Below, one piece after another: positions 22,721 to 58,330 of a stretch of DNA of 64,000 nt. The stretch's first letter is position 1. Each line of letters begins with the position of its first letter. A program made the position numbers and the translations under genes. Source of the DNA: Dendrobates tinctorius (Eukaryota); assembly GCF_039654945.1 (NCBI RefSeq), contig NW_027361870.1, positions 27,156,001 to 27,220,000 of the forward strand, written 5' to 3'. Below the pieces are notes generated by a model. The model did no database searches. It saw only the letters and a list, made by a program, of their open reading frames with translations, and was not told where the DNA came from.

Positions 22721-23229
22721 CAGAGTAACATACTTACCAATACTTGTCACATTGTTCCCCGAAGCCATTGTCGTCTACGGAATAAATATTAACATAACAA
22801 ACCACAAAAATACTCACCCACGATCCGAAGCAGTCCACGAGTGTGTCCCACGACGATCTTGGGTAGAGAACTGCAGCATCAGATGATGCTGCCGTTCTCT
22901 ACGGGCTGCAGGAATCCAATGGGAATTTCCCACGCAGCAATGGCATAAAGTGAGACTAGGGACTTTTTTTTTTTTTTAAGTGGCGGAGGAATACAGTGCG
23001 GAAGGATACCTACCTTCCGTCATTGGATTCCTGCAGCCCGTAGAGAACGGCAGCATCATCTGATGCTGCAGTTCTCTACCCAAGATCGTCGTGGGACACA
23101 CTCGTGGACTGCTTCGGATCGTGGGTGAGTATTTTTGTGGTTTGTTATGTTAATATTTATTCCGTAGACGACAATGGCTTCGGGGAACAATGTGACAAGT
23201 ATTGGTAAGTATGTTACTCTATGTTATAT

Positions 23230-23755
23230 GTACTGTATGTCTATGTATGTATTGTATGAATGTATTGTATGTATGTAGTATATATGTGGTATGTATGTAG
23301 TATGTATGTAGTATGTATGTAGCATGCATGTAGCATGCAGTATGTATGTAGCATGCATGTAGTATATATGTAGTATGTATGTAGCATGCATGTAGTATAT
23401 ATGTAGTATGTATGTAGCATGTATGTATGTAGCATGCATGTAGCATGCATGTAGCATGCATGTAGCATGCATGTAGCATGCATGTAGCATGCATGTAGCA
23501 TGCATGTAGCATGCATGTAGTATGTATGTAGTATGTATGTAGTATGTAGCATGTATGTAGTATGTATGTGGTATGTATGTAGCATGTAGTATGTATGTAG
23601 CATGCATGTAGTATATATGTAGTATGTAGTATGTATGTGGTATGTATGTAGCATGCAGTATGTATGTAGCATGTATGTAGTATGTATGTAGTATATATGT
23701 AGTATGTATGTAGCATGTAGTATGTATGTAGCATGCATGTAGTATGTATGTAGTA
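23230..23755 (-). repeat. Short (~0.5 kb) inverted copy of the same 11-bp satellite, right arm
   Basis: Composed of TATGTATGTAG / CATGCATGTAG / TATATATGTAG units. Confidence 0.95.
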
Positions 23756-23889
23756 TTTTTTTTTTTTTAACATTTAACACATTAGCCGGATGATGGGACT
23801 ACTACTGTCCCATCATTGGCTAATGTGTCAATCACTGTCATGGTAGCAGGCATCGCCCGATGGGACTTGTAGTCCCATCGGACGATGCC

Positions 23890-24135
23890 TGCACAGACCC
23901 CCGAAGCCTGCACAGACCACCGGCAGGCCGGCACAGCCCCCCGGCAGGCCGGCACAGCCCCCCGGCAGGCCGGCACAGCCCCCCGGCAGGCCGGCACAGC
24001 CCCCCGGCAGGCCGGCACAGACCACCGGCAGGCCGGCACAGCCCCCCGGCAGGCCGGTACAGACCCCGGGCAGTCCACACAGCCCCCCCGGCAGGCCGGC
24101 ACAGCCCCCCGGCAGGCCGGCAGAGACCCCCGGAA
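23890..24135 (-). repeat. 21-bp GC-rich minisatellite, right arm (reverse complement)
   Basis: (GGCAGGCCGGCACAGCCCCCC)n is directly visible. Confidence 0.95.
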
Positions 24136-56044: not shown

Positions 56045-56475
56045 CCACCTCTACTGCAGCCGGCCCTTGTTCTCCCTGGCGACCCCGCTGCGTCTCTAAC
56101 TCACGCAGCCTGCTCGTCCCTTCTGGAGCTGCAGGGACATCTCCACCTCCCTGCGGTAGCGGCGGAGAGGCTCACTAGCTGATTACAGGCGACCGTCTTC
56201 AGCTTTGAGGGGAGAGCTTCCTTTACATGCAAGCTGTGATATCTGCCTATAAAACGTGACGCAGCTGCGGCGTCTCCGGGAGCACGGGGGAAACTCCTAC
56301 TTTTGCTTTCGGTTTCACTGTAGCCGACTCCCGCTCTCCCCGGCGATCCCCGCTGCGTACTTATAACTGTCGCTGCCTGCTCATCCCTTCTGGAGCTGCG
56401 GGGACTTCTCCATCCCCCTGTAGCAGTGGTGGAGAGGCCCACAGAGTATATACAATTTACAGTCTTCAGTCCCAT
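56045..56475 (+). repeat. Imperfect GC-rich direct duplication (period ~265 bp), candidate L1 5' UTR monomers
   Basis: GGCGACCCCGCTGCG...CCCTTCTGGAGCTGC.GGGAC.TCTCCA...GGAGAGGC occurs at ~56078-56172 and ~56342-56438. Confidence 0.7.
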
Positions 56476-57233
56476 ATAACGGATCTCTTTCTGCATCAAA
56501 GTTGCGACTTCCAATCACAGCACCTACATCCCCTGCATCTCCTAAGCTGTTTACATATACTTTAACAGTAAATTGATTCACAGGTGATTGCTCCTGGGTC
56601 ACAACTAGTTCTTAGGACCTCATTGTTCCGAGTGACGCTAGGTCCAACTGTGATAAGGACCTACTTACATTAGCCTAACAGCGCCTGGTGATCTCTGTTG
56701 CGACATCCTTTGGGATCCTATTTTAGTTCGCAGCTGCGATCTCAACAATAATTAAAGAACCTACTACAACCTTAGAAGAGACCCCAAATTCTGCATTGGC
56801 ATCCCTTCTGGACCTAATCCTAGTGTCTCTGAGATTAAAGCACTTAAGTTGTTGCACCTAGTAGCCTGAACTATTATACTGAAAGTTTAGTTTATACACC
56901 TCTTGGGTCAACTCAGCTACTTTGTGGATCAATATTGACTTTCTTGTGGAATTTACCTTAATTCTAGTATATTCCATGATAGATTCTAGTAACTGCTACA
57001 TCCGTATATGATGTGAATAACTCTGGTAACCTTTAGTGATTCTAGTGTTTTCTAACCCGAATTTTACTGTAGTATATTTCGTCATATTGTTATCACTCTG
57101 TAGAATTGTACTGCAGGAATCACTTCTCTTCTTGTTCTGCCATCAATCCAGCCAAGACGAGTGACCCAAGACAAAGAGGTAATTTTGTTATAATTTAGAG
57201 GGGAGTACACGAATTCTACTTAACATACACACA

Positions 57234-58330
57234 ATGAAAAATTCCAGGTCACTCGTAAAGTCTAATACCCCATCTTCCCACAAACCATGTAGAAAAAATT
57301 ACCATTCAAACGACCAAGCTAAGGTCCTTAGCCCACTCAAATCTAGGTCTCCGCTAAAGAGAGAAGAGATTCTTTTGGGATCTAAACTCTTGAGTCAAAA
57401 TAGGCCTGAAACCACCCACTCTAAAAAGAATCTCCTATCCGATGAGATGGACTTATCACTCAATTCCAAAAGACAAACCCCAGGGTCTTGGGGAGAGAAA
57501 CACTCTGCCTTATCTAGAGAAGCCTCAGAAGAGGATGAGGATTCAAGCGATTACTCCCCTAATATCAGTCCAGTTAAAAATAAGCCTAGACTGGACGCTC
57601 CCCAACAAGACTATAACTCTAATTTCCCTCCTCTCTCTGCGTCCAAAGCTGGTCAAACCCTCTCTATTGATAACATTGAACATCTCCTAAATAAACTAAG
57701 GGTACCGTTACACTTAGCGATGCACCAGCGTCCCAACAACGATATGGATCGCTGGTGCATCGCTAAGTGGTCGCTAGTGAGCTGCCACACAGGCAGATCT
57801 CACCAGCGACATAGCAGGGGTCGGGGGTTGTTACTTACCTGTCAGACGCAGCGATCCTCCCGCCCGAGTCCACGCGTCGCTCGTCGGCGCCACAGGAAGC
57901 TTCCGACGAGAAATGGTCCAGGACGTTCTTGCGCGACCAGCGATGAGCAGCGGGGGAGCCAGTCGGAGGTAAGTATCAGACATAGCGATATCGCTAGAAA
58001 TTGAATCTCCTAGGGATACAATTCAGATTCATTTCTTTAAAACAAAAGGAGAAAATTCAGCAATACCTAAAGTCAGAGAAGACCTTCCCAGAACCCTTTC
58101 AAGGTCTAAAGACTTTTGCAGATTTATCCAAGGAAACATTGGATCTACGGAGGTCCTTCCACAAAATCACTGCAGCCCTTAGGGATAAAGAGATCCATTA
58201 CACATGGGGTTTTCCCCTTAAGTTACTAATCCACTTCAGGGGTAAAACTATACCAATATTCTCCCCGGAAGAAGGGGCAAACTTCCTGAGATCTCTGGCT
58301 GAGCCTTCCCACTCCAGGGACAATAGATGA
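57234..58330 (+). pseudogene. L1-clade ORF1 remnant, disrupted by a MITE and a deletion
   Basis: The C-terminal block FADLSKETLDLRRSFHKITAALRDKEIHYTWGFPLKLLI...SPEEG is typical of L1 ORF1p. The basic/Ser-rich N-terminus starts at ATG 57234. Confidence 0.75.
57700..57998. mobile_element. Harbinger-type MITE fragment inside L1 ORF1 (right end lost)
   Basis: TAA|GGGTACCGTTACACT start, AGCGA/TCGCT-rich interior, and a CpG-rich core between TACTTACCTG and GAGGTAAGTAT. Confidence 0.65.

Follow-up and report, generated by a model that had tools for sequence, protein, structure and literature searches.

What does it mean when several transposons within 64 kb of frog DNA are flanked on both sides by splice-donor motifs that point away from their centers? 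In the window analyzed here (the whole stretch of 64,000 nucleotides from Dendrobates tinctorius), the initial annotation described four such elements (E1–E4) and a decayed fifth (E5), and a blind scan for mirrored donor pairs recovered an additional palindrome at 39715–40378 that was absent from that list. Direct reading of the sequence found every listed motif at its claimed coordinate and strand, and a strand check of each motif confirmed that every pair in E1–E4 faces outward. Donors were scored with a custom 9-mer 5′ splice site position weight matrix (PWM; maximum 12.55). We favor, at a probability of roughly 40%, the reading that a subset of these elements contains a candidate promoter/first-exon-like cassette in head-to-head arrangement. 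The features are listed below, with a slash at the splice junction.

19029–24330: foldback element assigned to hAT, non-autonomous, host of E1 (sequence read directly)
22715–23227: E1 central palindrome, arms 22715–22921 and 23021–23227, 99% complementary
22730–22738, minus strand: E1a left motif ATACTTACC, donor TTG/GTAAGTAT (TTGGTAAGT, PWM 8.6)
22810–22818, minus strand: E1b left motif ATACTCACC, donor GGG/GTGAGTAT (TGGGTGAGT, PWM 8.8)
23124–23132, plus strand: E1b right motif GGTGAGTAT, mirroring 22810
23204–23212, plus strand: E1a right motif GGTAAGTAT, GT at 23205
24764–24997: E2 palindrome, 83% self-complementary, inside a larger hairpin-rich element
24774–24784, minus strand: E2 left motif ATATTTACCTT, donor AAG/GTAAATAT (AAGGTAAAT, PWM 8.1, weak, with A at +5)
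24977–24987, plus strand: E2 right motif AAGGTAAATAT, mirroring 24774
36887–37072: E3, a 186-bp unit starting TACTCACCC, with 23-nt inverted repeats at its ends, 91% complementary (donor AGGGTGAGT, PWM 10.3)
57832–57976: E4, two outward donors around a 127-bp core
57838 (G), minus strand: E4 left donor CAG/GTAAGTAA (CAGGTAAGT, PWM 12.55)
57969 (G), plus strand: E4 right donor GAG/GTAAGTAT (GAGGTAAGT, PWM 11.5)
13101–13414: E5, 78% inverted repeat
39715–40378: additional palindrome, 664 bp, 92% self-complementary
39752–39760 (minus strand) and 40331–40339 (plus strand): outward donors AAG/GTGAGA in the arms of that palindrome, PWM 10.7

Self-BLAST detected no similarity among the elements beyond the motif and no further copies of any of these elements within the 64-kb window. 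Membership in at least three superfamilies had been proposed, and could be verified for the E1 host only, which carries terminal inverted repeats (TAGAGTTGAGC... and ...GCTCAACACTA) with the short TAG/CAG-type start and a perfect 8-bp target-site duplication (GTCCTGAC, at 19021–19028 and 24331–24338); judged by these ends, it is a non-autonomous member of the hAT superfamily. Sequence inspection yielded no clear TWA duplication at E2, previously labeled Harbinger-type, and no clear TTAA duplication at E3, previously labeled TTAA-type, and the ORFs flanking E4, described as a MITE in L1 ORF1, contained no Pfam domain. A pseudo-ORF running through the 39715–40378 palindrome returned no protein matches. 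That palindrome is present at very high copy number (summed contig depth ~1e5, versus ~5 for unique DNA), and E3 at low copy number (40–123 against the same ~5). The claim of palindromic cores held for E1 (99%, around an asymmetric 99-nt loop) and E2 (83%), but not for E3, where symmetry is confined to the 23-nt inverted repeat and the interior is not palindromic, or for E4, whose two sides match over the terminal ~10–13 nt only. At the supposed donors of the decayed case, 13115/13393, neither arm contains a GT (GATGAGTAT / GAGGAGTAT), leaving a former donor there conjectural.

CpG observed/expected ratios of the cores were 0.88–0.95 in E1, 1.20 in E2, 1.27 in E4 (67% GC) and 1.35 in the 39715–40378 palindrome, but 0.26 in E3. 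Outward GC skew was above zero (+0.04 to +0.31) in each of the five elements with donors, so that E1, E2, E4 and 39715–40378 have the composition of CpG-island-type promoters (CpG-rich, with outward-positive skew), and E3 departs from that of a bidirectional promoter in its CpG content. The elements also contain YY1-, CRE-, ETS- and CCAAT-type promoter motifs, including two CCAAT boxes per E1 arm, an ETS motif adjoining one E2 donor, six of the eight YY1-type AANATGGCG motifs of the window within 39715–40378, and a CRE palindrome with one YY1-type motif in E5; the letters of the E2 left motif double as a TATA-like TATATTT facing inward. The donors of E1–E4 and 39715–40378 score 8.1–12.55 and offer up to 10 contiguous bases complementary to U1 (9 in the E1a left motif, able to pair with the U1 5′ end). 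TA occupies positions +6/+7 in five of the six mirrored pairs, which therefore fit U1 better than ordinary donors do.

Under the reading that we favor, each motif pair would be a single sequence that the inverted-repeat symmetry of its host, a non-autonomous DNA transposon, has placed on both strands; the hosts comprise a hAT foldback center, a palindrome lying inside another element, and two units with short terminal inverted repeats. A CpG-rich subset has in common a G-rich outward-reading strand, housekeeping-promoter-type motifs, and the sequence GGTRAGTA, complementary to the U1 snRNA 5′ end, 60–290 bp to either side of the center; the candidate cassette may be the element's own, or may have been captured and subsequently copied in inverse orientation. 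The read-through RNA of E2 has a predicted fold of −188 kcal/mol (z = −22), with a hairpin of ~115 bp that buries the donor in its stem. From this layout and predicted hairpin, we infer that an RNA reading through a whole palindrome would form a long hairpin in which the donor is masked by pairing with a U1-like complement of its own, and that only transcription starting inside the core would yield a single arm with the donor exposed. An exposed donor could bind U1, favor elongation and be spliced into flanking DNA, perhaps with some selective value. The CpG richness of the cores may alternatively reflect the mere youth of the copies, and E4 (127 bp) and E2 (195 bp) offer scant space for a pair of divergent start sites as well as exons. 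Of the two origins suggested initially, a convergent, selected promoter or U1 module would be consistent with the CpG-rich cores, outward-positive GC skew and promoter-type motifs; the orientation bias within the window is marginal.

It is quite conceivable, if not probable, that there is neither function nor special architecture here: palindromy doubles any motif, the outward strands are rich in G, T and A, so that donor-like 9-mers land there, and a reader is primed for GGTAAGT. Consistent with this, the window has no overall surplus of donor-like sites (24 scoring at least 10, versus 19.9 ± 4.8 under a first-order Markov model), and sites with at least 9 contiguous U1-complementary bases number four, representing two events, against 1.4 ± 1.2 expected. 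Moreover, a GTATGT-type satellite (TRF, 23205–23756) begins at the GT of the E1a right motif, at 23205, and donor 1a is the first unit or edge of this adjoining array; both arms of the hAT host contain satellite and 21-mer arrays. No GT..AG joint was present at 37066 or 36893 (E3), or at 39757 or 40334 (39715–40378), among the Logan contig joints listed, for which no run is recorded as RNA, and one contig from a possibly-RNA run crosses the donor at 39757 unspliced. Run X16 was rejected as RNA because it covers unique DNA at ~97–98% identity, marking it as DNA from a close relative.

Orientation speaks on both sides of this question. The blind scan found six divergent and no convergent mirrored pairs at a score of at least 8 and nine versus three at a score of at least 7, and among the 24 best sites all three mirrored pairs point outward (p ~0.04–0.06, scrambled-matrix control). 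Within the arms, shuffles predicted 2.1 outward and 1.4 inward donors scoring at least 8, versus 7 and 0 observed. However, column-scrambled matrices already yield a 1.7:1 outward ratio, and the real divergent-minus-convergent excess was matched in 4–18% of 600 such permutations, depending on threshold (p = 0.04–0.18). The outward-over-inward enrichment is present as a 6:0 count but marginal against composition-matched controls in the 64-kb window. Across 11 blindly detected palindromes there was no general outward bias (outward exceeding inward in 6 of 11; Wilcoxon p = 0.58), and the correlation of bias with CpG content was not significant (rho 0.49, p = 0.13). In the three CpG-rich palindromes of this set (E1, E2 and 39715–40378; observed/expected 0.93–1.28), outward donors score at least 8.1 and inward ones at most 4.1, and the CpG-poor palindromes show no orientation bias; the outward bias is limited to CpG-rich, G-skewed palindromes. 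Its coincidence with CpG-rich cores and promoter-type motifs argues against a pure artifact of symmetry, as do the TA at +6/+7 and the retention of the E4 motif on both sides while the remaining arm sequence diverged.

That retention, together with the position of the motif, would also suit a terminal or subterminal transposase-recognition sequence that reads ATACTYACC from the ends toward the interior and may adjoin a TA target duplication, in which case its resemblance to the complement of a 5′ splice site would be accidental. In E3 the motif is found 6 nt from the inverted-repeat end and in E4 11–13 nt from the unit edge (bounded here as 57825–57980), and in both it is the best-kept part of the arms; ATACTT/ATACTC occurs three times in each E1 arm; and the GTGAG-rich arms of 39715–40378 are built from CACTCAC/CTCACC sub-repeats whose number differs among copies. 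The same five of six pairs in which GGTRAG is followed by TA would fit as well. We nevertheless regard this explanation as doubtful: the E1 motifs occupy the center of an element 5.3 kb long, with over 1 kb separating them from the hAT end even on the nearer side, and the elements lack other similarity and, where typed, do not belong to one superfamily.

Considerably less plausible is the idea that, whichever way they are inserted, the elements serve as preformed cassette exons or gene traps, with entry through the complement of the donor, which would resemble a branch point and pyrimidine tract, and exit through the donor itself. The cores of E4, E3 and E2 are exon-sized (127–195 bp), and the plus-strand entry of E4 reads TTACTTACCTGTCAG/A, but the best acceptor sites score 7.7–9.5 on a crude scale whose 95th and 99th percentiles in the window are 8.9 and 10.2, so none stands out. 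The predicted read-through hairpin would moreover bury both ends of such an exon, and no joints of this kind were seen among the contig joints listed. An exon-intron-exon reading of E1 (GTGAGT...CCGTAG, ATG, GTAAGT) was dropped because its "intron", at 43 nt, is too short for a vertebrate.

The second origin suggested initially, foldback duplication of the first exon of a parent transposase, was contradicted by orientation: a parent 5′ end has the order terminal inverted repeat, promoter, exon 1, donor, so its donors would face inward, and no inward mirrored pair scored 8 or more. For a foldback origin to hold, the duplicated piece would have to be a promoter/first-exon fragment in head-to-head arrangement. 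Derivation of the arms from U1 snRNA genes or pseudogenes was rejected as almost certainly wrong, since the likeness of E4 to the start of U1, whose 5′ end is ATACTTACCTG, at roughly 14 of the initial 15 nt was accompanied by no Rfam U1 match in E1, E2 or E4 even at E ≤10 and by no Rfam match at gathering score anywhere in the window, the lenient matches being only generic hairpin and miRNA-precursor models far below their gathering scores.

Extending the candidate head-to-head cassette beyond this locus calls for more caution. It seems improbable, on present grounds, that dendrobatid frogs harbor, in their CpG-rich palindromic non-autonomous transposons, mobile two-way promoter/first-exon modules, with donors masked by hairpins in read-through RNA and exposed in core-initiated RNA, and that unrelated families reached this layout independently. 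If this were so, the elements would stay in open, unmethylated chromatin and so remain mobilizable, and would give rise to chimeric first exons whichever way they had inserted. Should the motifs be used, tens of thousands of copies would constitute portable, orientation-independent start-exon cassettes, a large store from which a mostly-repeat genome could draw new first exons, antisense RNAs and U1 recruitment, and a route by which non-autonomous DNA transposons resist silencing. If they are unused, the case is a caution that symmetric "consensus" motifs with a designed look arise from palindromy and strand-skewed composition.

Several known systems bear comparison with the proposed cassette. 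The human L1 5′ UTR contains sense and antisense promoters with splice donors that give rise to L1-gene chimeric transcripts, and the likeness lies in the proposed two-way transcription from a transposon, each direction meeting donors toward flanking genes; L1, however, is a non-palindromic retrotransposon whose transcripts are experimentally established, whereas the elements here are mirror-symmetric, non-autonomous DNA transposons whose transcripts are hypothetical. When a U1 site follows closely on a start site, productive elongation is favored and early polyadenylation suppressed, and the resulting U1-PAS axis, or telescripting, has reportedly been described at divergent promoters (by Almada in 2013 and Kaida in 2010). 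The U1 sites of host promoters are distributed asymmetrically, with enrichment in the sense direction only, in contrast to the frog elements, which have one in both directions; the U1-PAS idea would become testable on natural mobile promoters if these motifs are used. Introners, said to be MITE-like DNA transposons that create introns (attributed to Huff in 2016 and Gozashti in 2022), are likewise non-autonomous and carry splice signals at their termini or close to them, which in introners work in either orientation. Their entry-end donor points inward, is matched by an acceptor, and allows the element to be spliced out; here all donors point outward and acceptor scores are ordinary, with no strong acceptor, and we rejected an introner reading on this layout.

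A further parallel is the Pack-type capture by which hAT or Mutator elements take up host promoters and first exons, with examples in plants (PMC8903248); there a cut-and-paste carrier transports a promoter and an exon-1 donor, as proposed here. Unlike in Pack-type capture, no host gene was found to match any of the frog cores, whose fragments are arranged head to head as mirror images. Engineered activation-trap transposons such as T2/Onc combine a promoter with an outward splice donor (PMC7036786), the same arrangement of internal promoter and outward-facing donor that we propose, although they are man-made and one-directional. In Xenopus tropicalis, MITEs supply clusters of transcription-factor motifs to liver enhancers derived from them (PMC12676858); that report concerns enhancer activity and does not mention "splice donor". 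Our literature search, which included the D. tinctorius genome paper, found no description of outward donors in MITEs.

Two metagenome pattern scans were also run, one of which was blank; the other returned four unrelated contigs with matches of at most 32 nt. Separately, the window encodes a CR1 reverse transcriptase, whose best frog relative, at 85% identity, is from Phyllobates terribilis.

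Every donor motif of the initial annotation (a 5′ splice site-like, U1-complementary string) was recovered by direct sequence check, and every donor in elements E1 to E4 points outward, away from the element's centre. Scored with a 9-position vertebrate 5′ splice site matrix (maximum 12.55), these donors range from modest to near perfect (8.1–12.55). A blind scan for mirrored pairs returned exactly the five annotated pairs plus one more:

22730/23204, outward: donor pair E1a in E1 (22715–23227), centre of a hAT foldback; TTGGTAAGT, score 8.6
22810/23124, outward: donor pair E1b in E1; TGGGTGAGT, score 8.8
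24764–24997, outward: element E2; AAGGTAAAT, score 8.1, A at +5
36887–37072, outward: element E3; AGGGTGAGT, score 10.3
57832–57976, outward: element E4; CAGGTAAGT / GAGGTAAGT, scores 12.55 / 11.5
39757(−)/40334(+): extra pair within a 664-bp palindrome, 39715–40378; AAGGTGAGA, score 10.7

E5 (13101–13414), proposed as a decayed example, lacks the GT in both arms; as a whole, the original observation is partly confirmed.

The description of the cores as palindromic held for E1 (central arms 99% complementary) and E2 (83%), and failed for E3, a low-copy element bounded only by 23-nt inverted repeats, and for E4, whose near-perfect donors lie 131 bp apart with little further symmetry. E1 is indeed the core of a hAT foldback: it lies at the centre of a 5.3-kb non-autonomous element (19029–24330) whose terminal inverted repeats (TAGAGTTGAGC... 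and ...GCTCAACACTA) were verified, as was its perfect target duplication of 8 bp, GTCCTGAC. E2 is nested inside a larger hairpin-rich element, and its donor motif, read inward, is a TATA-like TATATTT. The palindrome at 39715–40378 contains two nested units of ~176 bp each and has arms of variable 31-nt CTCAC-rich sub-repeats; it is very high copy (summed contig depth ~1e5 vs ~5 for unique DNA), and among the positions listed only a few distinguish the window copy from most of its family. No similarity of these elements to one another or elsewhere in the window was detectable.

Chance, strand composition and ascertainment could together explain the outward donors, a possibility ranked only slightly below the preferred reading given below. 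Donor-like sites scoring at least 10 show no overall excess in the window (24 observed vs 19.9 ± 4.8 expected). Mirrored pairs run 6:0 outward to inward at scores of at least 8 and 9:3 at 7 or above, and the arms hold seven outward and no inward donors (2.1 and 1.4 expected from shuffles). Because the outward-reading strands are G-rich, column-scrambled matrices already favour outward pairs, yielding ~1.7 per inward pair and matching the real excess in 4–18% of 600 permutations, depending on threshold. Among 11 palindromes detected independently of donors, outward exceeded inward in six (Wilcoxon p = 0.58). Most of the signal comes from the CpG-rich palindromes of E1, E2 and 39715–40378 (CpG observed/expected 0.93–1.28; outward scores ≥8.1, inward ≤4.1), and its correlation with CpG is not significant at n = 11 (rho 0.49, p = 0.13). 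Sites with at least nine contiguous U1-complementary bases number four, representing two events, vs 1.4 expected. Evidence from this single window makes the pattern suggestive but does not establish it.

Several features of the cores are promoter-like. The claim that they are CpG-rich stands for E1, E2 and E4 (observed/expected 0.88–1.35 together with 39715–40378, vs 0.41–0.74 in control palindromes), and falls for CpG-poor E3 (0.26); this richness may reflect nothing beyond young copies. All five elements that carry donors have a positive GC skew when read outward, the polarity found downstream of CpG-island start sites. Of the eight ATGGCG/CGCCAT cores in the 39715–40378 palindrome, six have the YY1-type form AANATGGCG; the whole window has eight motifs of this form, one of the other two adjoining a CRE palindrome in E5. 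CCAAT boxes are present in E1, and an ETS core abuts one E2 donor. By sequence, the CpG, skew and motif features are compatible with a promoter.

Folding prediction for RNA that reads through E2 gives a ~115-bp hairpin (−188 kcal/mol, z = −22), with the donor paired to its own complement, a U1-like string. Such RNA would bury the donor in the stem, and, given this predicted pairing, only RNA initiated within the core would expose it. Masking of this kind is compatible with a promoter/first-exon cassette arranged head to head, our preferred reading at a probability of about 0.4. The proposed alternative origin, a by-product of folding back the 5′ end of the parent transposase, predicts inward donors and does not match the outward ones observed. 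No published description of the architecture was found in the literature; if real, it would be a new form of transposon-borne promoter/donor module.

Splicing was sought in four runs of assembled contigs, none on record as RNA, aligned to 36700–40460, which takes in E3, a control palindrome and 39715–40378; E1, E2 and E4 lie outside it. Among the joints and loose ends listed, none is a GT..AG junction at the donors. Contig breaks at 39736, 39753 and 40338 recur in a DNA run and fit sub-repeat number variation, not splicing, and in a run that may be RNA, one contig continues straight through the donor at 39757. These contigs neither support nor strongly refute donor use. Run X16, assigned to another organism and tentatively taken as RNA, spans unique DNA (36700–37726 and 38797–39222, ~96–98% identity). 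It is thus DNA from the genome of a close relative and could be used for empty-site comparisons.

It is unlikely that the motif is instead a terminal or subterminal recognition motif mimicking a donor complement: the E1 donors sit mid-element, away from the foldback's ends. ATACTY occurs three times in each E1 arm, and donor E1a is the first unit of a GTATGT-type satellite (array start 23205 by TRF). Cassette exons usable in either orientation are very improbable, acceptor scores being ordinary. Derivation of the arms from a U1 gene is rejected on the Rfam results.

The satellite arms of the hAT foldback, built of one 11-bp unit in inverted orientation, are very unequal (19565–22710, ~3.1 kb, vs 23234–23756, ~0.5 kb). 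Its subterminal hairpins (19114–19165, 19418–19464, 23846–23892) carry perfect ETS-type CCGGAAGTCCCAT and ZNF143-like ACTACAAGTCCCATCGG strings and adjoin 21-bp GC-rich minisatellites (19202–19423, 23887–24139). The CRE palindrome TGACGTCA occurs four times in the window, each time within or next to a transposon: in E5 (13172), in the hAT subterminal region (24184), in a Ty3-type element (30841) and in the flank to the left of the 39715 palindrome (39704). The E2 region (24743–25010) matches the plant MIR839 precursor model at 107 bits (gathering score 200); this is a generic long hairpin, and no microRNA is called. Around E4, open reading frames and Pfam gave no confirmation of an L1 ORF1 context. 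A 59-nt hairpin directly to its left (57711–57769; 25-nt arms, 92% complementary) and AGCGAT/ATCGCT motifs recurring across 57701–57998 suggest that E4 may lie inside a larger element of ~300 bp with ends CTTAGCGAT... and ...ATCGCTAG. Retroelement fragments surround these elements: Ty3-type protease/RT/RNase H/chromodomain ORFs (26899–30137), a CR1-type reverse transcriptase (45814–47103, minus) and an L1-type endonuclease ORF (60478–62196, minus). The nearest protein relative of the CR1 reverse transcriptase comes from Phyllobates terribilis (85% identity).
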